In this document: one piece after another, positions 263 through 61,616 of the stretch | Layout of the letters: each line of letters opens with the position of its first letter | Position numbering within the stretch: position 1 is the first letter of the stretch | Source of the DNA: Klebsormidium nitens | Lineage: Eukaryota; Plantae; Klebsormidiophyceae | DNA length: 64,000 nucleotides | Assembly: GCA_000708835.1 (NCBI GenBank) | Contig: DF237134.1 | Coordinates: 62,001-126,000 of the forward strand | Reading direction: 5' to 3' | Position numbers and translations under genes: made by a program | The notes under the pieces: model-generated | Told to the model about the DNA's origin: nothing | Seen by the model: only the letters and a program-made list of their open reading frames with translations | The model's database searches: none

Positions 263-3200
263 TTACCACCGGTTGACGAGCTGGTCCTTGGACGCGATGA
301 CGTCCTCTGCCTCGCGCGCGAAACGCTCGTACAGCGCAACGGCGTCGTCCAACTTGATCGTCAGCGACCGGACCTGAGGGGAAACGGAGCGTATCACTTC
401 AGACGCGTAAAAGAAACGAGAACATCGCCTCTTTGCTCGTCACGACCAAAGTCACAGAAGTGGTCTGGTGCTTCATAGCCTCGTTAAGGCATGGTCATCA
501 GCGAACGGACCTGAGAACGATGGATTTTACCCTCTGGGACACAAACGAAAGGAGGCAGAGCAGCGCTTGAAGTCCCCCGCAAAAGCAGAGCCATGCGCCC
601 TCTCCGCTTTTAGCAAGGGCTCAAAAGAACTGGCTCGAAAAGGTGCTCTGATCCCGATGCTGCTGGGTCGATGCTCTGCCACTACATACCATCAGTATCA
701 ATGAGGAATTCGACCTTAGCATCAATAAGGATAACCTGTTATCTGCTTGTGTTAAGGGTTTTGGGATTTGGAGGTTTTTGCTTCTTTGTTCAGTTGCGAA
801 AGGGCCGCACCTGGGTCTCCTTCTCAAGCCGAACTGCCTGTACTTCGTCCCGGGCTCTCTTCTCCACCTTGGCTTGGCCCTTGCTGAGTGCCCGGTTCGT
901 TCTCTCGAGCTCGTCCACCGTCATCTCCAGCTGCTGCAGCACGCCTAGCTTCTCGTCCAGCTCGCCCTCTACACGCTGCATCGCGGGTTGTGCGCAGGTT
1001 TGAGCACTTTAAAGCCCGTTGGAGGGAGTCTTAGACGAATGATTTACACATGAATGAGGTTTGTAACCGAATCAGCTTCGGCCTTCGAGCAGGTTTAGGA
1101 TGTGCTTGGTGCATATTGAGTCCGGATACAAAATGTGTGACAAGTGTCGAACAGAGGGGATGGACAGCGATCTCGTAGTCGGCGGCTGATTCCTCAAAAC
1201 AGGATAGAAATTGAACAAGAACTCTATTTGTGCGATCAGTTACTGTCAAACGTCTTTCTCAGTGCCGCACAGCCAGGTGTCAACTGTAGCTGAGGTCGCG
1301 CGCCGTGCGGCATCCCTCGCACGCTCTCACCTGCAGCTGCCGCCCCAGGTCGGCCGCCTGCGCGAGCAGCGCGCTGCGCTCGCGCTCCCAGTCGTTCATG
1401 CTGCGCTGCGCCGCGCTCGAGAGGCTCGCCACCTTCTCGAGCGCCTCGTCGCGGCCGGCCTCCGCCTCCTCCGCCCGCGCGGTCGCGGCCGCCAGCTGCA
1501 AATATGGTGCCGAGGGAAAATTATGAACGACATTCGAGAAAGACGACCAAATAGAAGGAGGCACGAAGTGGCCGCTATGTCCTGAATGTTGTCACAAGAA
1601 GGAACTTTTTCCTTCGTCCGAAAATCCGAGATTTTAATCCTGTCCGGACAAACGAGTTGGTCTGCGGGAACGTATGCGACCGCCGCGCCTTTGCTGCCTA
1701 TACAGCTGAGCACCTTCTTGATCAGCACTGAAGAAAGAATACGTCAGCAAGTCGTTTTCGCTCTCGCACATGCAGCTGCGAATTGAATGTAACCGCATGC
1801 TTTGCAGCTGATTCGTACTCCCACAGTCACTCTCAATCTTAAACTCTTCCAATATTCTTGCAACAAACTGCCGTCGGCTGACGTCGTCACCCCTCACCTG
1901 CGCCGCGTGCTTGCTGACGTCCTCGACGCGCCCCGGCACGAGGTGCACCGCGCGCGCCTTGAGCTGCTCCATCTCCGCGGCCGCGCTGCGCTTGTCGCGC
2001 AGCGCCCTGTCCAGCGTCGCGTGCAGGTCCGCGCACTCGGCCGCGGCCGCGCGCGCCTCCGACTGCGCCGCTGACAGGGCCTGGGCGGCGCGCGCGGCAT
2101 GGCTGCAAGGTCACGAGGCAAAAGGTTTTACCTCGATAGTTATCGAGGCTTGAATGTGGGGCAGACTCGAACGACAGAAAGTCGTTGGGCTCTTATCCTA
2201 GGAAACTGGATAAAAATCTTGCTTGACAACAAACCATTGCCATAGAACGAGAACCTTAACTTCCAAAAACCTGAAGTGTGGTTGAGGAATCTTTCTTGAA
2301 GAGACCCACCGGTTGACTGGCACGCGTCAACTGCCCGGGGTCTTTCCTCGTAAGTTCGCAGAAGGGGATTGTGGGGCCCCTAAAGAAAGGTGCCCAGTCT
2401 AGTTCCGATGCTCGGCCCGCCAGAAATCGCCCAGCATTTTGGCTACAGTCACGAGATTCGCGGTCAGCGTGTGAGCGGAAACTTATGTAGCCATTTTCCC
2501 CACGAGGACTTGAAGGACTTGAATAATGAAACGCATAAGCTAACTCCGGCCTCGCGCGCCGCTCACCTGGCCAGGTCCGCCTCCCGTTTGTTCGAGAGCT
2601 CGGTTCGCTGCGCTTCTAACCGCTGGGTTAGACTAATCACCGCCTCCTCCGCTCGGGCCAGCTTGGCCTCCCCTCGCGTCCGCTCGCTGCGCGCCTCCTC
2701 GGCCTGGCCACACCGGAGCGCTCGTGGGTCAGCGAGAGCATTGAACAGAATGCTGGCAAGATCAAGAAGTTTTTCAAAGGTCGTTTATGCGGGGTTTCGT
2801 TGAGCTTCGGGCACAACTACAGACCACAGCCCGTGCGGTTATATCTAGATTGTTCTGGTAGGGCACCGTTCTGGGTCCTATGTTTCAATCTGTGCGGCTC
2901 AGAAGGCACAGCCATTATGAGTGATCGGGTCCGGAATTTCATTTGCGCACTATGCTTGAACTTTACTGTAGCCCATATAGTAGCTCAAGCTTCATATGTT
3001 GCATGCCATACCCTCACAACAACAGCTCCATCAGCAGTATCCCTTGATACATCTATGTTTTCGTCGACAACGAGATCTCATCCGCATGCACAAACTTGTG
3101 ACTTTTCAAACGGCACCGATGTCCAGCACCGCGAGTTCTTGCACCCCTCACCTCGTCCCTTGCCTTCTTCACGTTCTGGAACGCCGTCTCGTCCTTCAGC

Positions 3201-6200
3201 TTATACTCCTTCAGTCGCACCTCCAGCGCTGCGGCCGCGCGCCGCGCCTCGTCCGCCTCGCGCCGCGTCGCCGCGAGCTCGCGCTCGCTGCTCGCGCACC
3301 TCTCTCGCCACGCGTCGACGTCGCGGCTGGCGGCCGCGAGCGCATCGGCGGCGATGCGCGCGCGCTCCTGGGCGGTCGTGGTTTGCGCTTCGAGAGCGGA
3401 GACGTCAGCGTGGAAGCGGGCTTGCGCAACTTCGAGCCGTCTGAGATCAAGAAAGCAAAAAATGTTCTATTATAACCTATGCTTGTTACAACGAGGTTCC
3501 TTAGTTGTAGGCTGGGGTACGAAGAAGAGTTGCTAAGTGAAAGGCTTCCTTTGTCGCAAGCTGTTGTACACACAGATGTTAGTGTTCCGCGAGTCCGCTC
3601 TGACGACCGACACTTACCAACGGGAGCACAGCAGGCCAACTCTAACACAGTACAATCGGCTTTTTAAAAGCAGAACTTGAGTTGAAACCAGCCGTTCTTT
3701 GTTTCAGAGGACAGAACTGCGTGGCGAATTGGTTTCTTCCTTGGGTGGCAGAGGATTCGTCCTTGCTTTCAGGGCTTAGCTCAGCATTGTTGCTTATTTC
3801 AACTTTGTTCAGACAAGCCCGTAGTGTTTCAGCCGTAACATGGATTTCGGCTTCCGCAATTTGCCACGTCCTGCACCGCCTCAAGCAACAGCCATTGTAT
3901 CGCTTCCTCGTTTTTGACAGCCTCGACATGTCAAGAACCTAACGAGTTTTCTTGGAAAGCCACTATGAAAGGAAATAAGAAGAAAGCTTGACCAAAATCA
4001 CTCATTCCTGAAACCACCCCCACCTATCTGCCCGTTAATTTATTTCCAATTATGCCCCTCCCAACGAAAAACAGTATTTCTCCTTGAAATTCCAAATCCC
4101 AACACCAAACAATCCCAAAGACCCGGAACCTGGTAACCAGAACTCTCGACGTAAATCTCGCTTTCATGAAGGTAAGCGCCAAGAAGGGTAACAACAACAC
4201 TCAAAACTTAAACCCAAAATCAACACGCTCGGCAACCGTACCCACCCTAACCCGCTAGCCAACCCCACCCGTCCCATTGCCCTTCAAGGCGCTTACCCTT
4301 CACGATATCGACCGGAATCTGGTGAGCCCGACAGTCGAGATTCTTCTACAGCACAAACTGGGAGCTTAAAGTGGGCGTAGGGCTCGCAAGCTCATCTGCA
4401 TCATGGACGGTGTTTGCAGCTGGGTTGAATTTATCGGACGGTTCACAGATAGCCTCTTCAACTCGCCCTCAGGACTCAGTCTCACTAGCGTGGTTACGAT
4501 ATACGACGCCCACTTTAAGCAGATTCCCACCTTCGGCAGTCTGCCGCGGTCTCCTCGGCGGCGCCTTTCTCGGCCTTGAGCCGCGCCACCTGTTCGATCA
4601 CCGCGTCGTACCCTTCCGCCAGCTGGCGCAGCTCCTCCTGCCGGCTGCCGCGCTCTTTTGCGCCCCGCTCTAGTTCCTCTGCGGCGCTCTGTGAGCGCTC
4701 GAGCAACTGCGCGACCTCGCGCTGCAGCCGGTTGTCTGGAGGAGAGAAAGAGCGTTAAGAATAGGTTAGGCAATGGCGTGACAAAGGCGCTGTTGAAACT
4801 GGCTTAGGGAAAAGCTGGTTCAGGTTGGGTTGCGGAAGGGCACCTTATCAGGCTCGGGTAAGGTGGCAGTTGGAGCGGTTGAATAGTCCACGAATGCTAG
4901 GAGGTAAAATCGGCTACAAAAATCCCGTTTCTGTCACGAACTGCAAAAAGCGCTCCGGAGCGGCTTTCTGAACAACCTGGTAGGCTTCGAAAACGTAAGC
5001 AAAGCCGCAGAATATGAGAGACGGGCTCGAGAGTGTGAGGAAAAATGCATCAAGTGGGACTCCATGGGGCGTTCTGCGAAGAGATTTTGGCAGCCCACGA
5101 TGTACGTTGGCAAACATTCAATAGGTCCGAAAAAAACCTTTCACCCAGTTCTAGGCGACGCGAACAACGGCAAACCTTGAATCAGTTCAAACCCAAGCTT
5201 TGACCATTCTAGGCCACACGATAAGACTGCGCAGAAATCGTCACTGAGGGCGCAGGTCCCGGTAGCTTACTCTCCGCAGTGGTGGTCGTGAGCTGCCCCT
5301 GAGCGCGAGAAAGTTCCGCCTCTAGTTCCCGCTGCTGATCCACCAGCAGGTCGTTCTCGCGCGACAGCAGCTCCAGTCGGGCCATTGCGTCGGAGTCGCT
5401 GCTCGGAAAGGTAGGCACGGGTTAGGCTAAGGAAGAACTAGGTCGGGGGGGAAGTTTTTCGAGAGCGGGCGTCTGAAGTCACCGTCGAAGTGAAGCATGC
5501 AACGGCTAGTTCAGAAGGAACAAGCTTCCTTTGGATATCTGGCCAGAAAAGTTTTGGTCATTGGCCTGAGCATAGAACAGTCTCTGGCGGACAAGAAAGA
5601 GTCTATCATTCTCCAGTAACAAAACGTTGGACCCATGCAATAGGCTGTTTGTCTGCTTGAAACAACTCGTGGTCCCCACGTAAGCGAACGACGGGATGCT
5701 TCCAGAGGCATACAATCAGCATCTAGTCCCTGCCTTACTCATCAATGACACAATTGATGAATTTAGTTTTTTCTTTTCTTCGTTCTTTTCTTTTCCCTCT
5801 TGTAAAGCCGCTGGGGCTGGTCCGTCAGCCCAGAGTCTTCGAGCTGGACTTTGAGGTTTCGTGGTGAAACTGAAAAAGCTGAAACCTGAAATGCATCAAC
5901 TGCCGCAGGGTAATCACGCTGAACCGATCAAGTTCCGCACAAGGATCTCAAGAGCTTCCGAGAGGCGGAGAGTTTTGCTCGACGTGGCCCATATTGCTTC
6001 CGTGCTGCAAACAATGGCAAGAATAACCTTCTGGAAGCATGCCCGAACAAGTTTCCAAAAGCCTCTTAACAAAGCCCCGGTCTTAAAATGCTTCTGGATA
6101 CACATTACAACCACACCACGTCCTCTGAGCTCGATCTTCAAAAGCTCAACCAATCATTACCTGCCAGGTGGCGCTCCCTCGGCCTCCCTGCTCTGGATGA

Positions 6201-8147
6201 CGTGCATACAGCGCTGCACTTCGGACAGCAGGTGCTCGTTTTCGGACACAAGCGCGTCCACCTGTACGGACAGCTCCTCGGCCCGGGCCTGCGGACAAGC
6301 AATGACACTTTCATATTACAGCTGTTTTCAATCAACCTGGCGATCTAGATAGAGAGGGAAGCTTAGAAAGTTAGAAAAGTTAGTTGTTGCTATAATGTCG
6401 CAGACGGGACTACTAGTCTATCCATCTACCTTTTGAACTTTCCCTCTCCTATCTGCATTGGCAGGTTGCGTCAAAGCGCTGTTGTAACCAAAAGGAATAG
6501 CCCTTGGGACGGGTAGGGTTGCTTTGGGGGTTTTTGGTGGTACGCTTGTGGAGCAGGTAACCCTTACAGGTTAGGATTCTAGTGTTTGGTTTTTGAGCTT
6601 ACTAGTCCTAAGGCTTACAATCCTAAAGTGTCGCGACATCCCCCAGACATGCTATGACAACAGACAAGACTTTGGTAGCCGGACAGTGGTGCAGGCGAAT
6701 GGCTAGTCACGTCGTCCACAAAGGATTTAGCTATCAAGAGATTTGAAGTGAAGATGTTGTATCTCGACATCAAGTGCCCCTTATACTCCTCCTACTCCCT
6801 CGGTCGTTGCTGAGGCTGCAGACCATGAACATTGCTTACCACGAAAGCAGGAGTGTTTGACAGAGGGGGAAAACGTGGTTGGACACAAACGATAAGGGAG
6901 CAAAGTTTGGGTCTCCTGATGTCCATCATAAAAAGTGGTTGGAAGTGTTAAACATGGTCAATGGACACAAAGCGCCTCATCTTGTTTGGTGCAAATAAGT
7001 CCCAAGACAGGACTCACTCAACAATCCACTCTCTGTCCTGCCTCCAGACTTTCAACAATTGCAGCTCACAGTGCCTTTCCTTTCCCAGCCACCGGGAAAG
7101 AAACTACACATTGCCCCGTACAGTTTCCTTCCGCAAGGTTTGCTGTCAAAAGCAGCCCCTAGCAACTCACCGTCCGCTCCTCAATCACCTCTTCCTGGTC
7201 CCTCAACCGCCGATCATATGCCACCATCAAGGGAGTGACTGCATCACTGTCGGCCAGCGACTGTGGCTGTGGACGGGGCCACCCTCCCGGGGGGCTGGCC
7301 AGAGGGCTGCGCCCCAGCCCCAGGGATCCCCCTGGAGAGGCGGCCTGGTATTGCGCCAGCTCTGCATTTAACCGTTGTACTGCAGAAGATTGGGCATCGA
7401 GTGCGTTATAAATCTGGTAGGTTGTGATGGGTATTGCGACCAAAGGCTTTCTGATGCCTTAAATGCGGACAAGTCAGAGGGCCGACAGGTGGCTGCCAGC
7501 ATATGGCACGTCATTATCCACACTGCTCCTGTCAGCTGTCCAAAGAGCAGGGACTTTTTGTTGGCTTCATTGATCGCCCCTACTGCACATCGTCCTGCTG
7601 TATTGGAGTGTTCGAATCAGGCTGGGTCGACCTGCACTATGCTTTGATGCACACCTCATCCATCCAGGTCAGAATCTGGGTGCAATAAGCTCTTCATCTC
7701 ACCACCTCGCAGGCATGCCACCGCAGGCATGCCACCTCATCGTTTGGCAGCTGATTGTGATGATGACAGCAGCATTGGTCACAATGTCTTCAGCAAAGCC
7801 TGTTTGAGTCAGCAATTCACAATGCGGCATCTCTTTGCGTTCCTGCATGAAGGTAGCTCTAACCTCAGTACATCAAACCCGCCAAACTCACCAACTCTCC
7901 CTCTCAGCGTGAATCACGACCTGACTCCGGTTCAGCACTTACCTTGATCCTCCAGGAACCGCATCTGCTGCAACAGCGCATCAATTTGCTCGCCCTGCGC
8001 TTCTTGCGTCTCTGAAAGGACTGAGCTCAGCAGCTGTCGCTCTGACTGCCGGCGGCTGGGGGGCACCCCAATGTCGCTTTCCACCAGGACCACCGAGCGC
8101 GGGGGGGAGGGCTTGTGGGCTGGGGCGTCCTCTGAGGAGCCCGCCAT
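263..8147 (-). CDS. SCLT1/CEP89-like centriolar (distal-appendage-type) coiled-coil protein, ~648 aa, 11 exons
   Basis: Exons 7943-8147, 7171-7379, 6161-6288, 5271-5398, 4531-4735, 3152-3440, 2567-2703, 1898-2102, 1331-1495, 811-975, 263-373 join with GT-AG sites and matching phases into one 1947-nt frame. The protein is heptad-rich throughout. N-terminal VTPLMVAYDRRL...QVDALVSENEHLLSEV...LELLSRENDLL resembles, from memory, the PL(L/V)xxY...ENExLxxEL segment of SCLT1/CEP89. The final TAA overlaps a possible GTAAG donor, so the 3' end could differ. Confidence 0.75.
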
Positions 8148-9271
8148 CTTGCCAGCAGAAAGGGTCAACTGTGGCCTGACTCGGTGCTCTTTGAACCAGC
8201 TGAACGTGCACAGCTTAAAGTTCAAGCGTTGGAAATCGGACTTTGGTCTATGCGGAGAACTACCGTTAAAGAGGTCTTGGTAGCGTACCTGGTAGCCCTA
8301 TAAGATGGTACCTATAGGTAACTCTGAGCTGATCAATCCGCAAATGAGGTGGCCTTCAGCTAAGCGAGCTCGTTACTGTGCATCGAGACCGTCCAAATCG
8401 TTTCATCTTTTGATCGGACGGCATAACGCTCCCATTTTACGCTCGCGCGCAAAGCATAAATTTCCGGCCGGTGGCAACTACAAGGTCTGCCGCGCGAGGA
8501 ATCATCATCCTTGGACCATCATCGCAGCTGGTCAAAAGCTTGTTCAACTCACTGCGCGTATCGAAGCTAATTCACCTATACAGCTTAGTGTGACTCCACG
8601 CGATTGATCAGATGGAAGCAGCTTGTGCTCATCCATGGCGAGTTATAAGCCCGCTCCTTTGAGTCGAGCTATTCAGCTATTGGTTGCACCTTCAAGACAT
8701 ATAGCTGCGCACGCATGCATGGTTTCCGCATGCAACGTTGATGCCAACAAAGTCTAGCTTCGAAATAGCCTATGCACCTTATGTTGCATCAACTTTTTGG
8801 CCCGTGATAATCTTGAGCAGTTGCAATGAAACGTGCATAATTGCATGTGCACGACAAGTCTTGTGTGGCATATCATCTGTGGAAGCCTAGCGAGGAACTT
8901 GGAAGCATCAAATGCACCCTCACCATCACTGAGTCACGTTTCACCGTCAGAAGCAATATTAACTCAAGAGCGAGACTGTCGTTCTGGTGGTTTGTTTGGA
9001 AGCAGCTCTTGTAGGGAAGTGTAATTTTCATTCACAACTGCTAAGCTGTTGTGTCAAGTTATAGTAACTCCTTTCCGGCTTGTGTTCATGTTTCTCACCA
9101 CGTTTGTTCCAGGATATGCAAGATTGACTAGCCTCAACATGATCATTATCTACAGGATGCACCTTTCCGTCTTTCTATACAGGTTGGGCGTCTCATGAAG
9201 CCACCGTCGGCTCGTAGCTCTTTCAAAAGTTCGTAACCTCGTAAAGTTACTCAAGCACCAGTAACGTAGGG

Positions 9272-12200
9272 CTAAAAGGCAGCCGTGTCGTACGACTTAA
9301 TGCCACTGTCCATCCTCGTGAAGACGGGTCCATTGGCCCCGGAAGAGGGTGGCGTTTTTGACACTCTGGGGCTCTCGAACAGGGAAGCGTAGTAGGTGGA
9401 CGTTGGCGGTACTGCAGCACAGGGGCGTTAACGTCAGTAGTTTGTTCTCGGCAGCCAAATATTGAGGTTAACTGTTAACATCTTTCTAAGCAGGGTTTGG
9501 CAAAGCTGCGGCCAGTCGGGTGCCCCCAGATCGTGCTTCGGACGAAATGACGGTTGAGTGCGCTTGCAAAGCTGACGGGAGTGAGGAATGAGCATGCATG
9601 TTGGACTGGCCTAAGCTACAGTATCCTTCTCGACTCAAACGTGAACATACAGTATCCTTGCAGAACAAGAAAACTCACCTTACATTTACCTTGATCAAGA
9701 GCATGACAGCATATGGCAAAATCGCAGGAGCTTCCATATGTACAACACAACTGACGAGTAGCTTCCTAGCACCTCGAACGGCAGCATTTGGCAAAGAACT
9801 CTCATCCCTGTAGTGAGCAACTTCTTCTCTCAAGCAACGCAGCCACCAGGAGCGCATAACTTCGATTGAAAGGTACCACATTCGACGAGCGTGCTAGTGT
9901 TTCGAGCAACAAACCAACGGCACAAGCGCGGATAGCGTACCCTTGAGATTCGGCAGGTTATGGCCGTTCGCCTCTCCGCTGCGGAGCGACGCGCGCGTGG
10001 GGGTACCGAACGCGACCGCGTTATCCATCAGGGCCTTCACCGGCTCCAGCCCGTACGGGTCGTTCTTCTCAATCACGGTCAAAACCGTGCCGCCGCCTGT
10101 GAACAAGTAGTACCTGGCAGAGGTATCGGATGGCATGTGAAAACGCAATCAGCCAACCGGAGCTGAAACGCCGTTGCAGGGGCTGCTGTGCTAAGGAAGC
10201 AAAGCGTCGAAGTTAAGTGTTCGACTCTTTTTTTCAGATACCCGGTTTGAGGTTTGTGCGAATGCTTCGAGTCTGTACCGAAGCACGGAAACCAACACAC
10301 AATAGTCGAAGAGCGGTTGTTCGAAGCAATGACGGGAAAGGGAAAGGGTACGGTGAACGAAACTACGGAGTGCGCATGGTCGTATAAGTTCAGAGACTTC
10401 ACCAGGTTCGCGTAAGCATCTGAGAATCTCCATGCAAGCGCCTTTCAAGATCAGGCAGGACGCTGGCAAACTTCGTATGATACCTGGCATTCCTCCTGTC
10501 TCTCGGCGCCGGTCAACCCAAAACCGCACATGCCGCAGAAACACTGCTCCGCAAAAAGCTCGGCTAGGCTGCAAATGTTGCCGCCAAGCGACAGAGGAAC
10601 AAATCGCTCTGGGCGAACAGGTGTGACGTCAGCATCGCAATTCTAAGCTGCGGCGGTGCTCACTTTGAATTGTCGATCGCGGCATGGTACAGACCGGGGT
10701 TGAGCGACTTCAGCTCTTGCAAAGTGTCACCACCGCCTGCAGGAAGAGAGACCACGTTTTCATTTGTCCTTTTTCTTACGTAAAGCAACTCGGCCTTTTT
10801 GTCTTGCGTTGAGACCTTTGAGTCCAGGCCTCTCCGATCCGAGGAAGGTACGGACCGCATCCGGAGCAACAGCGCTATTCGAACACACGAACTGTGACCA
10901 AACGACCCACTTCTCAAGATCCAAAAGAGGACTCCTTATAGGGGCCTTCCAACTTTCTAGGACGAAACATAAGCCTCGACAGGACCTGCAAACTTTGTGT
11001 GGGACAAGAGGGAAAACGAACAAGGCAGTGCAAACAACACTGGGCACGTGTCAGATCTCCGACCTGCTCAAAAGCCGCGACGTCCAAATTCAGAATGCCG
11101 CACGCATCTGAGCCTCACCGTAGTACTTTTGCGCGCCCGTGTTGCTGTCGATGACTTCGTCCATCTTCTTGGTGCCCTCGAAGAAGAAGGGCGTGAATCC
11201 CATGACCGCGTTCACGAAGATGGTCTTGGCCTCCGACAGCGCGCGCGCCACCTCCGGCACCTCGAACGACTTGGGGTCCGTGTCCAGGATGTAGCCTGCG
11301 GGGTGTGTCTATAAATTTCCGGTCAAGAACTTCCGTATTCGTTACGACTAGCTTCTTCTTCAGGGTCGTCCTTGAATCGACTTTCGAGTCCCTCTCCAGA
11401 GAGTCATAAAACATGTGTGAAGTACTAGTAGTGACACTTGTTTGCGGAACACCCTTCAATAAGTGCGGCCAGCATTTGGATACCTTCTACGACAAACAAA
11501 TTCGATGCTCAATTGGAGTAGGCTTCTTTAGGGCCTACCTCTTTCGAAGAGGTTCCCTTGAAAAAGAATCAGCTCGCCATCAAGATAGTCGGCGGCTTAC
11601 CGTACGAGTGGCCGGGCTTGAAGTCGGCGGTGCTGATGGTGCGGTACTGGCCCTCCTTGCGGCCGTCCAGCGTGTCCGACTCGACCAGGTACGGCAGCTC
11701 CACCAGCTTCTTGGCCTGCCAATCAACAGCCGCCACGTCAGACCCTGAAACCGCGCTAATGATTTGAGGACGCGAGCTCCTTCAGAAGCCTCTGCGCGCA
11801 CTGATGCAGGGTCCTCTTGCCTCAGAGAGACTGTGAGATTCTGGAACCTTCGTTCATTACTTTTGTAGGCTGGTCGGAGCAGCACGAGGAACGAGGAAGC
11901 AGAATCGCAGCCCGTGAAGCGAGAGAACGAGCTCATATTTTTGAAAGAAGTGGACCTCGGGTTGTCACCTCAGACAGGTCCCACCCTACCCCGCGAAGTG
12001 CAAAAAGAGCGACGAACTTAGGAGGTACAAAGGAATGACAAAGATCCCAACAGAAAGCCACGAGTGCTCAACCGATTGAGCAGAGCAATCAAAGTCAACG
12101 AGAACGACAAAAATCCTCAATCTCAGCCCGGCACAGCAACGCGGAAGAGCGCGCGCGCACCTGCTCGTGCCATTTGACGAGGCCCTTGGCCAGGTGCACG

Positions 12201-15200
12201 TCGGACCATCACAACACCTCTGGTATCTGATTGATAGACAGAGCAATCAAAATCGACAACGCCGAAAACAACTCTTGATCTCAGCCTGGCAAACGCGCGC
12301 GCACCTGCTCGTCCTGCTTGACGAGGCCCTTGGCGAGCTCGACGTCCGAGTCGTCGACGCCCTTGATCTTGACGCCGTACTTGGCGCACAGGTACGCGTT
12401 GTACACCACGCCGCCCAGCAGCAGGTGGTCCACCGTCTCGTAGATCTTGGACAGCGGGCCGATCTTGGTGTCGTACTTGGACCCAGCCACAACTGCGCGC
12501 GTGCAGAAAAAGGTCAGTCAAGGGGGTGGAAACGCTACCTAATAGCGGGCCGATCTTGGTGTCGTACTTGGACCCCACCACAATTGCGCGCGCGCACAGA
12601 AAAGGGTCAGTCAAGGGGGTGGAAGAAACTTCCTGCGGATCCTCAGCGGGCTGGCGTTGTACTCAACCATTGCGCGCGCTGTGGACCGGGGGAATCAGTC
12701 GAGGGGTAAAAAACAGCTGCCTACAGGATACTAGCTTCTTTCGCCAGCGGGCTGGTTTTATATTTGGTACTGCTTGCATAGTGTCAGGCGCCACCAGCAG
12801 AAATGATACAGCAAACCGGACGTTCGGGGTCGTACTTAAGCTAACGCACTTATGTCGCACATCACAGTTCTGCTCCCACCTCGTTTTTTGGGACGGTTCC
12901 TTCTTTCGAGCAGAAACGTAAGAAACTCTCAAGAACGGGCCGACGGGATTGGATGCAACTTATTGCTGTCAGGTGGGCGGCCGAGCTACGGAAGCTGCAG
13001 TTTGACCTTCCGCCCATGCACGCCCGGCACAATGACTAAGTTTCGACCCAAGATTCAAAGTTACATCTGAAAGAGGATAATGGAAAGTCAAACTCACTGG
13101 AGACGAAGGGGCGACTGGGCCGCAGGATCTCGCTGACGTGCTCCAGCTCCGACTGCATGAGCAGGCCCGCGTAGCTGGGCAGTAGCTTGGTGATGTGGAA
13201 CGTGGTCGCGTGCGGCTGCCACGACCCGAACGCGTCGTTCACGTAGCAGTCCGCCAGGCCCGCCAGCTGCACCACGAACCGCTGCATCTGCTCGCCCTTG
13301 TCCTCCTCACCCTGCACGCAGCAAGTAAGTCTCGATGAATTGGAAGCTCGTTCTATCAGGCCTTAAAGTGGAAAAGCCGGATCCCGACGTTCACGTGCCA
13401 GCTGCACAACGAACCGCTGCATCTGCTCGCCCTTGTCTCCTCGCCCTGCACGCACAAAGAAGTGCAGCGGTGTCCTGGAAGGTGACAATCATAGATTCTT
13501 TTTGGGGAAAGCCAAATGGTAGTAAACAGCGCATTGTATGATGACCCGAGGAATGGTTTTTTTGCCCTGCGCACTTGTCTCCAAGGATTCAAGCGCGCTA
13601 TTTGTACGGTTCGGGACGGCAATCTAGTGCACCAATCTGTGATTCGGAACTCAAATCCAAGTGAATCGCTGGGGTTGTCATGCTGGGCTTCTCATCACGA
13701 GCCTAGCAATCAAATGATGAAGGCTGCCGAAATATGGTCTATCTGCAAATTCATTCACCTCCGCTAGGTACTCCTGAGTATGCGAAGCGTGGGGGCCAAT
13801 AGACGGGCAGTCGACTCCCGCTGCTCACCGCGAACCACCGGGTGTTTGGCAGGTAGATTCCGCCAATGCGCCTCTCTCGCAGGTCGTGGATCAGGTGGTT
13901 GATGCTCGTATCGATGTCCAGGATGCCCTTGTCTCCCCGCGGCTGGAAGTTGGGCACCGCAAACTTGATGCGCAGCTTGCGCTGCAGGTACGTCACTACG
14001 GCGTCCACGGCGTCGTTGGGGTCACACTGCATTGCGAAAACGTTATTAAAGAACTCGCCTTTGCTTCGGAGCCAGATCCAGCATTCGTGAGAGCAAGGGA
14101 TCTGGATCAAGGAGTCTGCTCCATTTTGTGAAATTGTTGGTACTGGAGAATGAGCGCCTATCCGAAAAGTGGAAACGGCTTTAAGGACAACTTTAATCGT
14201 AGCAGACGACCAGACAATATACAACAGAATTCGTGTGCATCAAAGCTGTTCAATGAACAGGAAACAAGGAACACTTTTCTATCCAGGGGCCTTTGTCCGA
14301 ATCCTCTTCTTCCTGCCTTTGTCTCCTATTCACCCCTGATTGAAAGCAGTGGTCGGCGCTGACCTTAAGTGTCTTGGTCTTTTTGTCATAAGGCCGATTC
14401 ACGTGTGTCATCAGAATGGGGCGCCCTCCGCGCTCAGCAATGTTGTACCTGCCAGGAGGTGTGCAACTCGTCATCGTGGCCAAATGTTCAGTGGTGCATC
14501 AAGCGTTTCTAGGTTGACTAACTTAAGAAGTGAATTGGAGGGCGGCTATGCCTTCCTTCACACACTGATGCTGTGAATGTGTTTCAGGAGCGGTTAAACT
14601 TTTCCCAACAACAAAAACAGAAGACAATGAAGGCTTTGGAGTCGGATGCCCAATTTGAGCTTCGATGGAAAACATCTCTGTATAGTACTTCCTCGGGTTC
14701 CCAGCTCGACACACTAGGTCGAGATAAATAGGCAAATCAGCGATCGAAGTTTTCCAGCCACATCATTAGGTCTCTACAGCATCTTGTATGAACGACTTCA
14801 TGTACCACCATCGACAAGCCAGACAACAATCTCCCAACAATTGAGCACTTACAATGTCGCCAACGTGCAGTCAATTCTGTACTGGTCCAAGATCTTCCCC
14901 TTCTTGACAACGTTGTGATCCTGCATGCAACATATTTCACAGAGTGTTTCCGCAAAAGTTCCTGCATAAGTGACCCTTCGCTAATCAAGATGAATCAGCT
15001 ACAATCTCTTGCACCCGTTTTTCTCAATAGTACATAGATCAAGCACACACAAGTCAGACTGCTTATCACCGATCACTGAACAATCTGTGATGCCAACTTT
15101 TTCAAGGCCTATTTCTGTATCATGGATGAGGGTCAACGCTAAAATAGTTGAACAATCAGTAAGTTCTCTTTGATGCTACTTAGAGCGGAGAGAATCGGAG

Positions 15201-15604
15201 TATCATACAACAACTAGGAGGATCTGCCACAATAAGTGTCCTTAGAGGCACCGACTTGTGCAAATCAGCACAGTCAATCAGTGCAAGCCCTGCATTGTGC
15301 AGTCAGACCTCAAAAGAGATTTTTTACGCACCACTCGAAGCAGAACGATTTTGTCCTGCAAGTCCGCATCCTGGACCTGCACCAATCAGAGCACAGCATG
15401 AGTTTGGACACACAAGAACCAGTGCTTGATGTGATCAATGAGCATGAGTGATGATGGCCAACTTTTCATTTCATGTAAATCTACATTGAATTTACCTCCC
15501 AGAAGGTCACAGCCATCTGGTGGAAGCTCCCAGATCAAATGCATAGACCAACTCACCAAGGGCAAGCGTGGGTCCACCTTGTACTCATACTTTGAGTCGC
15601 CCAT
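9272..15604 (-). CDS. PGK: Phosphoglycerate kinase of a divergent type, ~507 aa, 12 exons, with a Ser/Thr/Pro-rich C-terminal tail
   Basis: Exons 15557-15604, 15332-15376, 14853-14920, 14364-14448, 13829-14026, 13098-13311, 12305-12492, 11601-11715, 11119-11295, 10664-10736, 9941-10113, 9272-9411 are phase-consistent. PGK motifs occur in order: LLRVDHNV, YRID, LMTHVNRP, LPNTRW, YVNDAFG, AGSKYDTK, LLLGG, GGGDT, FTGGGTV. The start codon and last exon are less certain. Confidence 0.9.
12074..12350. repeat. Decayed ~150-bp tandem duplication spanning the PGK donor site at 12304
   Basis: 12074-12205 repeats 12229-12350. The copy reads SDVHLAKGLVKWHEQ|GTGCGC versus the true SDVELAKGLVKQDEQ|GTGCGC. 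The decoy donor lies 144 nt downstream on the transcript. Confidence 0.9.
12464..12710. repeat. Three-copy tandem duplication spanning the PGK acceptor site at 12493
   Basis: The unit agcgggccgatcttggtgtcgtacttggac...caa(c/t)tgcgcgcg...ggtcagtcaagggggtgga starts near 12465 and 12544, with a more decayed copy near 12644. In the extra copies the acceptor AG reads AA (plus-strand ct to tt, e.g. 12584). Confidence 0.9.
13263..13465. repeat. Partial duplication of a PGK acceptor plus exon start inside the upstream intron
   Basis: 13397-13463 (gccagctgcacaacgaaccgctgcatctgctcgcccttgtctcctcgccctgcacgca) copies 13263-13330 with a 1-nt deletion. The AG is retained. Confidence 0.9.
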
Positions 15605-16790
15605 GCTTGCAGGTGTGGAGGAAACGCAAGTAGGCAATGTACTAAGAGTTGGTTATAGATCAATTCGTCTTCTGCAAATGAATCTTGCCTTTCCAGCGTC
15701 TTGAACAATTGTAGGGGAAACACGGGACTCTCAATTGTCCCTTGCTAGCAGAGAACGAAATGGCACCTTGGGATGCTGCCTAATCAGTATGCACCAAGAC
15801 ACCTCTGACACCTTAAAATCAGCTGCCAGCGAGAAATGATCACCAATCCTGCAAACATTCATAAACCAGCGGGTCGCCTCCTTCCTTGCAACATGTGCAG
15901 AGCTGGATGACAAGGAGCAATTGCGTCGCTAGCAACGTCTTGTTTCGATTCTTCGAAGTCAGGTACCTACATACGGTAGAAGAACAGCTGCGGAGTCCAC
16001 GTGAAAATCTAATTCCCTCCTGACGCAATCTTATCAATGCAGTCGCTAATTGAGGAAGACAAAGTTGAAGGGTGTGGCGGCGCATGGCCCCGTTCAATCG
16101 CTTGCTGGTTTGTCGCAGAAAGAAAATGGCGCAAGGAATATCCAATCATTGCAGCCGAAAAGGATCACGTGGTTTGCAGACAAGTCATCAGTCGCTTCGC
16201 ATGACGTCTGTTTTGCCCCTCGCTGTGAGGCTGGTGTCGTCAGCGGAGGCGGCGACGAGTGTATTCACTTTGGATCATTCGTGTCGGAAGCATCGAGCCA
16301 GGTAATCACTGAAGCCGTTCTCTCCGGCCAAATTCCTCTCGATGTAAAGGGGCCCCCGCGTGGATTCTGGAGTCCAGTCAGCTTCAGCTGCCAAGTCAGC
16401 AAACCAGATAAAGTCGCGAAGGCCCTGTGACGGTGCTTCTTCACTTCCGGAACCCACCATGCGCCCTGAGAACCCCCAGCCGAAATGGTTTGCTGACCAG
16501 CGCAGGGCCTCAGGCTTTGGTGGACTTTCTGTTGAAGCGGAACTTGCAAGTGATCATCGTCACGTGAAAGCCTGCAGCACATGCGGTAGGCTGGTCTTGC
16601 ATTTGCTTGCCGCCCTTCGGCAGCAGACACGATAGATCTCCAAGCTGAAGTTCAGCTTCACAAAAGCTGTCTTCCCTCAGAAACTTCTGAAAAATTCTTC
16701 TTTCCGGCCAACTCTGTTTTGGAAAGTTGGCGCCTCAGCTGCTCAACCCGACCCTTTCTCTGCAAGGCTTCTCAATTCAAGTGACACAAG
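15605..16790. promoter_or_regulatory. Putative bidirectional promoter / 5' leader region between PGK and GAPC
   Basis: Divergent ATGs at 15604 (-) and 16791 (+). A CpG-rich patch at ~15900-16640 holds three CACGTG G-boxes (15998, 16166, 16561). Function is inferred from position only. Confidence 0.55.
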
Positions 16791-20609
<3,819 letters not shown>

Positions 20610-37267: not shown

Positions 37268-38106
37268 CTCCAGTTACATAGCGCCGATCCGTTACCTGTC
37301 GCGTGTTCCTGATCATCATGTACCTCGCAGTGTCCTACTTACAAGCATTAAGCAGTGTAGCTTTGTGCACGTCTCATGTCATGCAATACGCGATCAGAGC
37401 TCTCTATTGATGGCTTGCTACTGCAATCAGACCGTCTGTTTTCATGTCGACCGTACTTCATTCGATCAGGTTTTTAAGCAGAAGAGACAAAACGCAATAA
37501 CCATGGTATACATATGCGTCATATACCCTGAAACTCAGGTGCGTGGCACTACTATATAGTCATTGACTATAATCATTGAAAGAATCCCCAAATTACAGGC
37601 ATGCAGATGCGCGGGTATGCATTATTGCCCCAGCCACTACACAGTCATGTCATCATCCGGTCCATCAACGTATGATTAAGTTGACGGCTCCTCTATGTAT
37701 GCTCAGATGCACAAATCCGTAATTTGCACACAGCAATCGAGGAGACAAGATGTTGGAACGGATGTACGTTGCCTGGCATCGTAACGTAAGCATCCGACCA
37801 GTGATAAGCTGGAAGATAGCGAAATGTCTTCTGGGTGAGCTTTCTTTAGACCTCTCAAAGAATGCAACAAGTTGTTCATCACAACGGCGCTGGTTATGCA
37901 GCGACAGACCTCTCTACAACGCTCTCTCTTTCTGGGCCAAGCCCTACAGAGTCCTCCAACAGCAATTGCAACTGAAGCTGCGAACTCCGACCGGGGAGCA
38001 CCATTCGGCGGCTGGTAAGGCATTGCGCGTAAACGACCTTAGCAGTTAGACCATGACTGGGAAGTACACTCTAAGTGAAGAACCAACCGAACAGCAGTGC
38101 TTGAGT

Positions 38107-41100
38107 TCACTCGCCTTCCTCGTCTTCGCCTTCATCCTCGTCGCCCTGTAAACAATTTCGACAAAAGAGTCAATGACAACCTCATGAATACAAAAGAGAA
38201 AAATGGGGGTAAAAGCGGGTTAACAGTCGCTTGTGGGGGCGATCTTCCGTATCCAGGCAGGTCAGAAGCGCAGGCCGTTCACTTTGCGTTACATGAATCA
38301 TTGACGAGGCTCTGCGTCGGCCGTAAAGGCTGGGGCAAAGACCCTGCCAGCATAGAACCTCAACCTCAGGTTATTGACCGTGTTGTGACTTAAAACTCGA
38401 TGTTGGCGGGTCAATCAATCCCACACTGGCTTCTTCGTTCCCCAAGATCCAAATCCTAAGTGGAAATTCAATAAATCCAGAGGCTCACAGCAAACGCGAC
38501 CTTCAGAGCCCAACAAGACACTGAGCATTGAGGCCCAATGAGTCGCCGCAATATCTGATAGACACCCGGTCAATCAACCCAAACCCTGCTTCATGCAGCG
38601 GCGAGAAGTGATGCGCTCACCCCCTCTTCGTTCCCCTCCTCGTCGCCCTCGCCCTCCTCGCCGCCCTCCTGAAATGGACAGACCATTTTTTTAGCGCTGC
38701 TCGGTCTACTTCACAGCAGCCATGATTTGCAGTCGAATCACTGCGGTGCCGTCCTGCTCTGCCGAGACTGTTCAAACGAAATCAAACTAAGTCAAACAAC
38801 CACAACAGACACACACTCTATACATAGTCAGTCCGCCACCCAAAACGACGGTCTCACAATCTGGTCCAGATGCGGCTTGCGCCGGAGATGGGAAGTGTCC
38901 GCTCAAAAACGGCGCACGACTGGACCACGAACGCGAGAAAATATGATATTTGAGCAGGGGGCCAGCTGTGACGACCGCAGATCATCTTCTTAGCTGCAAA
39001 TCGTCTTCCGCATGCGCAAGTCCCAGGCCGTAAAAGTTGGGCCGATATGAAACGAAGAACAGGTAAAAGAGCAACTCCGCCCGCTTGCTTTCGAAGTCGC
39101 TTCGCTCTCGCTACCACTTCACTGGATCAAGCGTTCGGTTGGCACAAAAGTCACCTGTCTCGGCCCTTATTCTTGGCCCCTGATGTGCAGAAGATGGTGA
39201 GGCAACTGGTTGGCCGACGTCGCACCAGATCGACCTAATCACAGAGATCCTTGCATATCTGCTTTCGTTCCGCCTTGGCACTTTCTAGTCCCTTATGGAA
39301 ACCAACAAGCAACAATACTGACCACTCCCCCTTCCAGAAACTCACCTCTTCTTCCCCTTCCTCTCCCTCTTCCTCTGCCTCTTCCGCCCCTTCTTCTTCC
39401 TCCTCCCCTTCTCCCCCCTCCTCTTCTTCCTCCTCTTCGCCCTCTTCCTCCTCCCCCCCTTCTTCTTCCTCGCCCTCTTCTCCTTCCTCCCCCTCTTCCT
39501 CTTCTTCCTCCTCTAGTTCCTCCAGCTCTTCTTCTAGATCCTCCTCGCCCTCGTCCTCCTCGTCATCGTCCTCGTCGTATTGCTGCAGAGGGATCCCTTC
39601 GCATGAGTCTATGCATTTTTAGTCTTCTACAATGTCGCTTCAGCATTAATCCTTTACCACTGCAGGACAGCTGTTTGCGACACCCTTTCGAGGACGTCGG
39701 GGGCAATCCGAACAGGTGCAAGATCCCCGAGTCATCTTCCGAAACGTGAGGTGACCTGTGGGGCAGTTTGCATCTCGGGGAGGTCGAGCATTCAATTCTA
39801 TTCTTTTCTGTATCTTATTATTTGTCGCACATCAAGGTGTGCGTAACAACTCCTCGCCGTAGGCACCAATTACACAGCGATCAAGCGAAGAGAAGCTATC
39901 AAAGCCGACGTTCTGGACCGACTTCCTGAGCGACATTCTGAGCTGCTGATTCACTTAGGCAAGCTGCCTTTCGGTTACGAGCACGGAGTATAGCCGTACA
40001 AAAGTAGACGGAGAAGGATCCCGGCTGCAACCCTAGACCAGAACCTTGAGTCAGGTTAGCCGAGATCTTGCAGAGAAGCCCACGACGCCGTCTGACGAGT
40101 ACCCTCTGACGGATTCCCGTTCTAAGGAACTTCGAAAAGTTTCTATCCGTCTCGCTTCTGTGAAATACCCTCAAGAAGGCCAGCCTTCGAAGGTTCGAAC
40201 GGTCGAAGCCTGTGTTAGCCGTCCCCGCAGGTGCAAATTCGATAGAGGATCCGAAACCGCGGCCCGTCATGGCCCACAGCCCTTCAGCAGAACAAACAAT
40301 CGCAGAATTCATGCGCGGATCAGCACTCACGTCGCTGTTGAAGTACTTGAGCGGGTTCGGCCACAACTCGTCCTTTATTACCTCGGCAATCTGCAGGGGC
40401 GCAACGAGTGACGTCATCACTGATATCCGGACGCTCGGCGCGCACCAACACCAGCTGGCACCGAGTGCAAGGGGAAAACCGGAAGCCCGAGCCTCGCCGT
40501 CCTTGACTTTTCGTACTTCGTTACAGTGGTCCTCTGACGCTAGTGATGTTCTGCTACGCTCAAAAGATGGCACTTTCATCCAAACGGCACCGCTTTTGGC
40601 CACAGAATACTTGGGTTGCATTCGGGAGCGCGACCATAGAAGCCGGAGTTCGAATCTGACGCGCTCTTTAGAACTGCTTGAGAAACCGGGACCGGATTTC
40701 TTTTAGAAGAGGGGTCGCGATTTCGATTGGCGCTGGCCGACAAGCCAGCAACACCGCCAAAACGTGACGACGAATCCCCACCGAGAAAGGCTAGGTTTTG
40801 AGAGACACAGTCCGGTCAAGTCAGCGGTAATTGTCGGAGTCGACTTGCAGTCTTGCACGGTAACTATGGGCTTGTTACTACGCCCCTTGGACAATGTCCT
40901 TGGATATAAATTCAGGCAAGCAGAAAAGCGCTACAAGCTCTCGAAAGCAGTGCGCGGCGCTCACTTGGTCCTGGTCTTGGGAGGGATCGTACGTGGCGTC
41001 GCTGTCGTTGAACCACCGGAAGAAGCTGCGCAGGAACGCGGGAGGTGAGCAAGAGGGGTGAGCTGACGTTACTGACGTCGGCTACTTTGCAACCCGAAAA

Positions 41101-57570: not shown

Positions 57571-58653
57571 AAGATCCACCGCCGTAGAGAAGCTCAGCTA
57601 GAGGCACTTCGAGAGTCTGTCCGCAGCTTGCGCAGAGCTCTCGAGGCGGAGGCGGCGCGCAAAACTAAGGCAGAGGCGGCCGCGAGGCAGGCCCGGTCAG
57701 AAAAGAACGTCCTTCAAGCGCGAGTCACGAGCTTAAGCAAGGATCTTGCCAAAGCACAGAGCGATCTAAAGGAGGCCAGGTCAGAGAACGAAGTCCTAGA
57801 AGCAAGGCTTTCAGCACTAGAGACGGTGACAGCGGAAAAGGAGAGGGAGGGCAAGCAGAGAGTGTCGGCTCTTGAGGAATCTCTGAAGGGCTTCCGCGAG
57901 GCGGGCGGGCGATGCGCGAAGGAGCGCGAGCGATTCTGTTACGTACTCGCATCCAACGGCCAGGAGGGCTCCGTTCCTTGGAGCGCCCTGGCGTCCGATC
58001 CGGAGTCGCTGCTTCACAAGATGTACTGCGGGGAGTGGGACTACGCGCGCGACGAGAAAGGGCGCGCGCTCGTCACCTGCCACCCGCAACGGTGGGCTGC
58101 CATCATAGAGCACCTGGCGACCGGAGCGGTTCCGGCGGAATGGGATCCGCAGCTCCTGGCGCAAGCGCGGCACTGGAACCTGCAGCGCTTGGTGGAAGGC
58201 CTCGAGGCTTCGATTCCTGGGATGACCGTTACGGCCGACCCAGACTCCAAGGGGTTCAAAGTCCGTTGCGTGTTTGCGTCCGTGATGAAGGAACTGAGCA
58301 GTGGCGAGAAGCTGATGAAGTATACGTTTTCAGGGCCGCAGAAACGATGGTGGGCCGTGAAATTGACGGAAAAAGGCATTTGCCTTGGTGCTGTTGCGCC
58401 TCCGCACGCTGGCAGTTCCAAGGTAAGCGGGTTACGAGAGATCAGTGCAGTTCTGACGTTTCGAGTAGTTTTGCGGAATGGAGACATGGTGAAGAAATCC
58501 GCAGACCCCGTCCTATTTTCTGCCGGGAAAGAGGAGGATCGGGGCTTTTTCTGGCAGAGATGGGAGCACGACTTTCATCAGTTAGTCAGCGAACCTTTGG
58601 CTCCAGCATACAATTGTCTTGTAGTTGAGATAACAGCCCGCTACGTAGACTGA
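57571..58653 (+). CDS. Coiled-coil + KCTD-type BTB/POZ + MATH-like C-terminal domain protein (5' end unresolved)
   Basis: Open frame of ~360 codons. LASDPESLLHKMYCGEWDYARDEKGRALVTCHPQRWAAIIEHLATGAVP...LLAQARHWNL fits the T1-type BTB pattern. The C-terminal beta-rich region (RWWAVKL...LTFRVVL...DRGFF...LVVEIT) resembles MATH/TRAF. There is no in-frame ATG before 58021; a possible first exon is 56617-56703. Confidence 0.7.
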   Translation, partial: KIHRRREAQLEALRESVRSLRRALEAEAARKTKAEAAARQARSEKNVLQARVTSLSKDLAKAQSDLKEARSENEVLEARLSALETVTAEKEREGKQRVSALEESLKGFREAGGRCAKERERFCYVLASNGQEGSVPWSALASDPESLLHKMYCGEWDYARDEKGRALVTCHPQRWAAIIEHLATGAVPAEWDPQLLAQARHWNLQRLVEGLEASIPGMTVTADPDSKGFKVRCVFASVMKELSSGEKLMKYTFSGPQKRWWAVKLTEKGICLGAVAPPHAGSSKVSGLREISAVLTFRVVLRNGDMVKKSADPVLFSAGKEEDRGFFWQRWEHDFHQLVSEPLAPAYNCLVVEITARYVD

Positions 58654-60539: not shown

Positions 60540-61616
60540 CGCCGGAGAGAGCGCGGAAAACGCTGAGCTAGAGGCGCTTCGAACGGCTGTCGGCAGCTCG
60601 CGCAAAGCTCTCGATGCGGAGGTGACGCGCGCGACGGAGGCAGAGGCGGCCGCGAAGCAGGCCCAGTCAGAGAACGAAGCCCTTCAAGCGCGAGTCACGA
60701 GCTTAAGCAAGGAGCTTGCGAAAGCACAGAGCGATGTAAATGAACTCCGGTCAGAGAACGAGGTTCTTCAAGCGACGCTTTCAGCGCTGGAGACGGTGAT
60801 AGCAGAAAGGGAGAGGCAGAGCAAGCTGAGAGTGTAGGCTCTTGAGGAATCTCTGAAGGGCTTTCACGAGGCGGGCGGGCGATGCGCGAAGGAGCGCGAG
60901 CGATTCTCTTACGTACTCGCATCCAACGGCCAGGAGGGCTCCGTTCCTTGGAGCGTCCTGGCGTTTGATCCGGAGTCGCTCCTGTACAAGATGTACTGCG
61001 GGGAGTGGGACTATGCGCGCGACGAGAAAGGGCGCGCGCTCGTGACCTGCCACCCGCAACGGTGGGCTGCCATCATAGAGCACCTGGCGACCGGAGCAGT
61101 TCCGGCGGAATGGGATGCGCAGCTCCTGGCGCAAGCGCGGCACTGGAACCTGCGACGTTTGGTGGAAGGCCTCGAGGCTTCCATCCCTGGAGTCACCGTC
61201 ACAGCCGATTCAGACTCCAAAGGGTTTAAGGCACGTTGCGTTTTTGTATCCGTGATGAAGGGACTGAGCAGTGGCGAGAAGGTGATGAAATATAAGTTTG
61301 CAGGGCCTGAAGGTCGATGGTGGTCAGCAGAAGTGATGGAAAATGGCATTTATCTCCGATCTGTCAAGCCTCCGTGCGGTGGCGACTCGAAAGTGAGTGA
61401 GTTGGAGGAAATCAGCACACAGTTGACGTTTCGGATAGTTTTGCGGAACGAGGAGATTGTAAGGACAACAAAAGATCCTCATTCATATGCTGCTGGAAAA
61501 GAATCGGATTGGGGCTTTAGCTGGAAACACGGATATCAACAGTTAGTCAGCGAGCCTTTAGCTCCAGCTCATATGACAATCTTGTTCTCGAGATAGCAGC
61601 TCGCTACAAAGTGTGA
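60540..61616 (+). pseudogene. Disabled paralog of the coiled-coil/BTB gene
   Basis: In-frame TCG to TAG at 60835-60837, between the coiled coil and the BTB domain. A 2-nt insertion near 61569 shifts YDNLVLEIAARYKV* (equivalent to YNCLVVEITARYVD* in copy 1) out of frame. Confidence 0.8.

Follow-up and report, generated by a model that had tools for sequence, protein, structure and literature searches.

The analysed stretch of DNA, 64,000 nucleotides of contig DF237134.1 of Klebsormidium nitens (hereafter, the window), contains on its minus strand, at positions 9272–15604, a gene for an atypical phosphoglycerate kinase (PGK). The gene is a PGK4A-type paralogue and it is not new, as the K. nitens copy was already described by Foflonker and Blaby-Haas in 2020 (Mol Biol Evol, PMC7826186). 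We think that this nuclear, intron-rich and transcribed paralogue of a streptophyte alga probably encodes an active kinase for an acid similar to 3-phosphoglycerate (3-PG), with altered substrate handling. Activity is suggested because the residues for phosphoryl transfer are strongly conserved, as are all but one of the four ligands of the 3-phosphate group.

Altered motifs and retained catalytic residues

A reading of the letters of the window without database searches (the sequence-only reading) had pointed out five altered motifs, and all of them are present in the predicted product: DHNVV (residues 32–36), THVNRP (68–73), NDAFGSWQPH (173–182), VNAVMGFTPFF (348–358) and FTGGGTV (408–414). 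It had also proposed the loss of an arginine of the basic patch and of the ribose-binding glutamate, and both losses are borne out by alignment. The position of Arg170 is taken by W179/Q180 inside GSWQPH, and H69, R72 and R145 are present. HMMER pairs GS-WQPHAT with the GTAHRAHAS of solved PGKs, which amounts to a one-residue deletion with loss of the His-Arg pair. A basic residue is found at this position in every full-length, unbroken canonical PGK that was aligned, either within xHRxHAS or, in two variants that have lost one residue, as Arg/Lys. As for the glutamate, when HMMER aligns a family member with 1VPE, the two residues F-E of the latter have no counterpart; the ribose-binding residue is Glu343 (PMC4106842).

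These features are common to the whole family, for which the motif table gives the signature DHNVVKKG, LPNTRWF, NDAFGSWQPH, AGSKYDTKIG, LGGVIYN, FVNAVMG(F/Y)TP, GGGDTLQ and FTGGGTVL. In an alignment of 33 members, with a mean column identity of 54%, the S-W-Q of GSWQPH, N-x-R-W-F and the lysine pair of SKYDTK either do not vary or are conserved to at least 90%, and this holds for the new residues W175 and Q176 across bacteria and algae. The equivalents of K215, K219, R38, N336 and D374 reach the same level. Invariant residues, or nearly so, among the 33 members are, in the numbering of P0154 (a family member 65% identical to the window protein), H65, R68, R141, K221, K225, G242-G243, N345 and D379-T380.

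Comparison with canonical PGK (EC 2.7.2.3, PF00162) is made here in human/pig numbering, with equivalents taken from alignment and the residue of the window protein in brackets. The fold, the domain order, most of the substrate-binding residues and all the phosphoryl-transfer residues are the same. On the 3-PG side, Asp23 (D32), Asn25 (N34), Arg38 (R46), His62 (H69), Arg65 (R72) and Arg122 (R145) are kept. The phosphoryl-transfer and nucleotide side keeps Lys215 (K225), Lys219 (K229), Gly237-238, Asn336 (N349), Gly340 (G353), Asp374-Thr375 (D383, T384) and the TGGG loop. The roles of Arg65, Arg122, Arg170, His62, Asp23, Asn25 and Asp218 in PGK have been reported, Asp218 forming salt bridges with Arg65 and Arg170 upon domain closure (PMC7729029).

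Four changes run through the family. Arg170 is replaced by W/Q with a one-residue deletion, so that of the basic patch His62/Arg65/Arg122/Arg170, which binds the 3-phosphate, the first three residues remain and the fourth is missing. The equivalent of Asp218 is moved by one position (D227, in SKYDTK). Glu343 is deleted from VNAVMG(F/Y)TP, and in WNGP the residues Val, Ala and Val stand in place of Trp, Gly and Pro, so that the canonical nucleotide motif WNGPxGVFE reads VNAVMGFTP in the window protein. Besides these changes, the canonical LLEN is LPN in the family.

The alignment shows strong purifying selection, in bacteria and algae alike, on the full phosphoryl-transfer apparatus and on the three remaining ligands of the 3-phosphate. 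The altered motifs are not a product of drift: the same signatures recur across a conserved family, and the changes exceed chance. Mutation of Arg168 in the yeast enzyme or of Glu343 in the human one lowers affinity or rate without abolishing activity, which would agree with an active enzyme.

Family, fold and phylogeny

Exons 6, 7 and 9 of the gene each pass the gathering score of the Pfam family PGK (PF00162) by themselves, with E-values from 8e-17 to 2e-6, and full-length family members span positions 1–377 of the 379 of the profile (E ~1e-78). A structure model was made for P0154 with AlphaFold2 (predicted local distance difference test, pLDDT, 92.7), and all 50 structure matches listed for it are solved PGK structures, with target-normalised template-modelling (TM) scores of 0.72–0.89. 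The family thus has the two-domain PGK fold in full.

An exhaustive HMMER search with exon 6 gave 46 proteins at E≤1e-10, and the full-length top matches that were fetched carry GSWQPH (GSHQPH in P0039) together with the other atypical motifs. A word search with the member P0015 gave at least 120 proteins of 432–470 residues, with 60–85% identity among the matches listed. Those that are named come from Desulfobacterota/Thermodesulfobacteriota, Nitrospirota, Nitrospinota, Planctomycetota, Spirochaetales and WOR-3, and all the listed ones bear the automatic database name "phosphoglycerate kinase". When a single genome of each GTDB species was scanned, at least 512 loci were confirmed, from over 500 bacterial species, mostly Desulfobacterota.

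By identity, the closest full-length relatives of the window protein are bacterial: 65% over 430 residues with a 437-residue protein of Desulfatibacillum aliphaticivorans, and 65% with one from a metagenome-assembled genome of Spirochaetales. Identity to the marine picoeukaryote proteins P0034 and P0022 is 46–53%, and to four canonical PGKs only 26–33%. The closest eukaryotic relative found, at locus L091, is 68% identical; the locus is AT-rich and has introns. The departure from plant and bacterial PGK that the sequence-only reading had seen is thus real with respect to canonical PGKs, but it does not set the protein apart from bacteria, since hundreds of them share the atypical motifs. To judge by sequence, the family is tight, separate from canonical PGK, and common to green-lineage algae and hundreds of bacterial species.

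Phylogenetic analysis agrees with the proposal of a separate PGK-like subfamily. The family forms a clade apart from 40 canonical PGKs, and the split is supported at 100% by the SH-like approximate likelihood ratio test (SH-aLRT) in one tree and at 100/100 in another. The window protein falls outside the canonical clade and not within ordinary plant PGKs; the protein of L091 is its sister at 100/99. In a quick tree, the window protein groups with P0022 and P0034 at 97%, and the eukaryotic members are nested inside a clade rich in Desulfobacterota. In a more careful tree, with more eukaryotes and a long outgroup, the eukaryotic members form a weakly supported basal grade; in an unrooted careful tree, six eukaryotes make up one clan with moderate support (77/15, in 82% of the bootstrap trees).

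The interpretation given in the sequence-only reading is upheld in part: the separate subfamily is established, the horizontal acquisition is plausible, and altered kinetics or an altered substrate range stand as a hypothesis. With an identity of 65% between alga and bacterium, against about 30% to canonical PGK, a transfer of the PGK-like gene between domains of life is very likely. As the placement of the eukaryotes varies with sampling and rooting, the trees do not fix the direction, number or timing of transfers. A direction from bacteria to the green lineage is favoured only by the breadth of the distribution.

The 2020 paper describes four non-canonical PGK subfamilies in green algae (PMC7826186). 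PGK3 of Chlorophyceae and PGK4A of Mamiellophyceae adjoin genes for an ArsJ-like transporter and the bacterial-type GAPDH3, the PGK4A genes of K. nitens and Selaginella are sited away from ArsJ/GAPDH3, and streptophytes also have PGK4B, a PGK-TrmB fusion. Chlamydomonas PGK3 (Cre07.g354250) resembles the window gene in being a non-canonical PGK paralogue; it stands beside ArsJ and GAPDH3, and its insertion mutant is arsenate-sensitive. By the paper's description it is set apart from the window protein, as PGK3 is a subfamily of its own, related to actinobacterial, chlamydial and deinococcal PGKs.

The window protein shares the signature motifs of the picoalgal PGK4A genes found beside ArsJ and ArsJ-type GAPDH, and it groups with them. 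The lack of an ArsJ/GAPDH3 neighbour reported for the K. nitens gene is likewise seen in the window. Two points differ. The paper calls PGK4A algal-specific, with no bacterial relatives, whereas here close homologues are found in the above-mentioned bacterial species, at up to 65% identity; and the head-to-head arrangement with a GapC-type GAPDH gene, treated below, does not appear in the passages of PMC7826186 that are drawn upon here. The function of PGK4 is stated there as unknown, and literature searches found no later functional work on PGK4, the PGK-TrmB fusion or the Desulfatibacillum PGK.

Gene structure, transcription and neighbourhood

The exon model was built from strand reading and GT-AG rules. 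The gene occupies exactly the range from stop codon to ATG and consists of 12 exons and 11 GT-AG introns, which give an open reading frame of 1524 nucleotides and a product of 507 residues. The ATG lies at 15604–15602, with an in-frame stop 16 codons upstream. The G+C content at third codon positions is 0.86 in the coding part, against an intron G+C content of 0.50, and the codon bias is host-like. The exons are the following, all on the minus strand, with their evidence in brackets:

15557–15604, minus: exon 1, residues 1–16, with the ATG (GT donor, upstream in-frame stop, N-terminal homology to bacterial members)
15332–15376, minus: exon 2, residues 17–31 (AG/GT signals; the RNA loose end at 14921 is the reverse complement of the 3' end of this exon)
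14853–14920, minus: exon 3, residues 32–54, DHNVV at 14906–14920 (RNA joint 14445(+3)/14850(+3), 4 runs)
14364–14448, minus: exon 4, residues 54–82, THVNRP at 14391–14408 (splice signals, RNA joints)
13829–14026, minus: exon 5, residues 83–148, PNTRWF at 13832–13849, Arg122 equivalent kept (splice signals, RNA joints)
13098–13311, minus: exon 6, residues 149–220, NDAFGSWQPH at 13210–13239, Arg170 equivalent lost (Pfam PGK E=8e-17, alignment to PGKs of the PDB, RNA joints)
12305–12492, minus: exon 7, residues 220–282, AGSKYDTKI at 12461–12487, both lysines kept, Asp shifted by one residue (Pfam PGK E=1.5e-10, RNA joints)
11601–11715, minus: exon 8, residues 283–321 (splice signals, RNA joints)
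11119–11295, minus: exon 9, residues 321–380, VNAVMGFTPFF at 11183–11215, ribose-binding Glu deleted (Pfam PGK E=2e-6, RNA joints, HMMER alignment of a family member to 1VPE)
10664–10736, minus: exon 10, residues 380–404, GGGDT, the Mg/phosphate loop, kept (splice signals, RNA joints)
9941–10113, minus: exon 11, residues 404–462, FTGGGTV at 10083–10103; PGK homology stops near residue 436 (splice signals, RNA joints)
9272–9411, minus: exon 12, residues 462–507 and stop, a non-conserved, low-complexity C-terminal tail (RNA joint 9411/9941, 4 runs)

The last ~70 residues, past residue ~436–439, have no homology to bacterial members. At the other end, the junction between exons 1 and 2 is based on GT-AG signals and homology, the N-terminus KVDPRLPLVQDADL matching the bacterial MKFDPRLPLVQDADL.

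Evidence from RNA was obtained by mapping contigs from four public runs, belonging to four studies and two organism labels, to positions 9250–15249 of the window. The contig joints coincide with all nine introns predicted in this range (from exon 3/4 to exon 11/12), and the loose end of a contig at 14921 runs on into the 3' end of exon 2. In the best run the depth is roughly 1000 over exons; over introns it is 0–28. The joints at the predicted introns and this contrast in depth lead to the conclusion that the gene is transcribed and that, between exons 2 and 12, its splicing follows the model.

Three short tandem duplications have placed copies of exon-intron junction segments of the gene into adjacent introns:

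12081–12349: duplication of the exon 7 donor (75–84% identity, spacing 144–158)
12453–12624: duplication of the exon 7 acceptor (90–92% identity, spacing 91–93)
13262–13437: duplication of the 5' part of exon 6 (98% identity, spacing 135)

No RNA contig joints were found at the duplicate junction copies in the four runs, within the mapped range.

The PGK-like gene is flanked in the window by ordinary eukaryotic genes, and upstream of it the arrangement is as follows:

15605–16793, no strand: divergent intergenic region of about 1.2 kb between the PGK-like and GAPDH genes
16794–20609, plus: gene for a GapC-type glyceraldehyde-3-phosphate dehydrogenase (GAPDH), head-to-head with the PGK-like gene; 5' limit approximate (exon matches)

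The exon translations of this GAPDH gene have their best matches in the structures of rice and Arabidopsis cytosolic GAPDH (GAPC). Among the NCBIfam families, a general type I/GapA-type one scores best for every exon tested, with the ArsJ-associated family lower or without a match. An ArsJ-like gene was not found anywhere in the window by tblastn with two ArsJ-like proteins, nor was any gene for an ArsJ-type GAPDH or triose-phosphate isomerase (TPI). As L091 has no GAPDH within 10 kb, the PGK-GAPDH adjacency is not shown to be conserved and may be lineage-specific.

A different neighbourhood is found in the picoeukaryotes. The gene of P0272/P0022 adjoins a GAPDH gene and a gene of the major facilitator superfamily (MFS), that of P0292/P0034 stands head-to-head with an MFS gene, and two further loci have these same arrangements. 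The best NCBIfam family is ArsJ (NF033734, 346–391 bits) for the MFS proteins and ArsJ-associated GAPDH (NF033735) for the GAPDHs. In one picoeukaryote contig, the PGK4A-like gene (L090:8087-14563) has head-to-head upstream an MFS transporter gene that resembles the ArsJ-type ones, its family being assigned by resemblance only; a PHO4-family phosphate transporter gene lies ~2 kb downstream, a possible phosphate/arsenate theme.

In bacteria, clustering of the open reading frames around 80 loci revealed no neighbour family recurring at a fixed position. The neighbour families at these loci are generic ones (HD-GYP/GAF, ABC, hydrolases, DctP and sensor kinases). With two Desulfatibacillum loci added, tblastn was negative at all 82 for ArsJ, GAPDH, TPI and a second PGK at distances of up to 8 kb.

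Some other features of the window may be mentioned. On the minus strand, 266–8300 is a series of exons rich in G+C at third codon positions, with Ala/Glu/Arg-rich, coiled-coil-like peptides; these exons probably form a single large gene that lies downstream of the PGK-like one. On the plus strand, 57571–58650 and 60838–61593 are long open stretches ~3 kb apart with near-identical peptides (...SVPWS.LA.DPESLL.KMYCGEWDYARDEKGRALVTCHPQRWAA...), which suggests a local tandem gene duplication. There is a strong excess of C over G at 38001–40000 (GC skew -0.20), and a CT-rich, low-complexity run at 39322–39513, the opposite strand of which reads Lys/Arg-rich.

Substrate handling and possible role

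In the explanation that we favour, the enzyme would move phosphate between a nucleotide and the carboxyl/acyl-phosphate group of a 3-PG-like acid. Its 3-phosphate site, domain-closure contacts and ribose contacts would be remodelled relative to those of housekeeping PGK, and its substrate affinity, regulation by anions and domain-closure behaviour probably differ. It would probably act in the cytosol, alongside a GAPDH; the cytosolic location is proposed because there is no N-terminal extension relative to the bacterial members. The picoalgal orthologues beside ArsJ and ArsJ-type GAPDH suggest, by analogy, a link of PGK4A to arsenate handling.

Several points weigh against this explanation. 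Activity on 3-PG is a prediction from residue conservation. The fourth 3-phosphate ligand is lost together with its closure partner, and a different anionic substrate would be equally possible. There are clear changes in the nucleotide pocket, with W, G and P replaced by V, A and V and the Glu missing. The negative result for gap, tpi and a second pgk up to 8 kb from the 82 bacterial loci fits an accessory gene and not a housekeeping one. For the link to arsenate, the window offers no ArsJ-type neighbour and the bacteria no conserved context.

Part of this evidence can be read in favour of an active kinase that prefers a substrate or phosphoryl partner different from 3-PG/ATP, an idea that we can entertain only tentatively. 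The candidates would include some other anionic hydroxy-acid, in algae an intermediate related to acyl-arsenate, and a nucleotide or phosphate donor of a different kind. Arg170 changes together with Asp218, its partner in domain closure, the Glu that binds ribose is gone and W175/Q176 are conserved; besides, green algae retain PGK4A in addition to canonical PGK (PMC7826186), the bacterial loci lack glycolytic neighbours, and the picoalgal orthologues have ArsJ and ArsJ-type GAPDH beside them. However, the phosphate ligands His62, Arg65 and Arg122 are kept, and so are Asp23, Asn25 and Arg38, ligands of the 2-OH and carboxylate groups, so that the pocket still looks fit for a 3-PG-like molecule; moreover, the gene context yields no candidate substrate.

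It seems to us improbable that the protein has lost its catalytic activity and serves, as a PGK-like pseudoenzyme, in structure or regulation, in the manner of the flagellar PGKL of trypanosomatids (Tb927.11.2380). Two classical ligand contacts, Arg170 and Glu343, are indeed gone, and the lack of the same ribose-binding Glu is one of the arguments for the inactivity of TbPGKL (PMC4106842). Nevertheless, the latter is a multidomain protein of ~100 kDa, predicted to be inactive and poorly conserved between species (PMC4106842), whereas the window family is single-domain and highly conserved (60–85% identity within the bacteria, 65% from alga to bacterium), and it keeps the catalytic residues Lys215, Lys219, Arg38, Asn336 and Asp374-Thr375 invariant or nearly so; furthermore, the window gene is clearly transcribed. 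Finally, an ordinary plant-type PGK or a bacterial contamination of the assembly, which the plain database name of the members and the bacterial origin of the best full-length matches might bring to mind, is for practical purposes ruled out by the position outside the canonical clade at 100/100, the 11 spliceosomal introns, the host-like codon bias, the spliced transcripts in four studies and the ordinary eukaryotic genes on the flanks.

A wider proposal, which we put forward as a doubtful but conceivable one, is that the PGK4 family has an uncharacterised activity: a remodelled PGK-fold kinase for a partner other than 3-PG/ATP, found both in the green lineage and in over 500 bacterial species, most of them anaerobic; in algae this activity would have been recruited beside algal GAPDH genes for the handling of arsenate or triose phosphates.

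The subfamily and the copy of this species have been known since 2020. The present analysis adds that PGK4 is not algal-specific: it occurs widely, and with high conservation, in Desulfobacterota and in other bacteria, so that easy sources for recombinant enzyme are at hand. It also adds a divergent region of 1.2 kb that the PGK-like gene has in common with an ordinary GapC-type GAPDH gene, without ArsJ in the window. Besides, the catalytic core is intact by alignment and Arg170, Asp218 and Glu343 change together, which in our opinion speaks for an active enzyme that handles its substrate differently and not for a relic.

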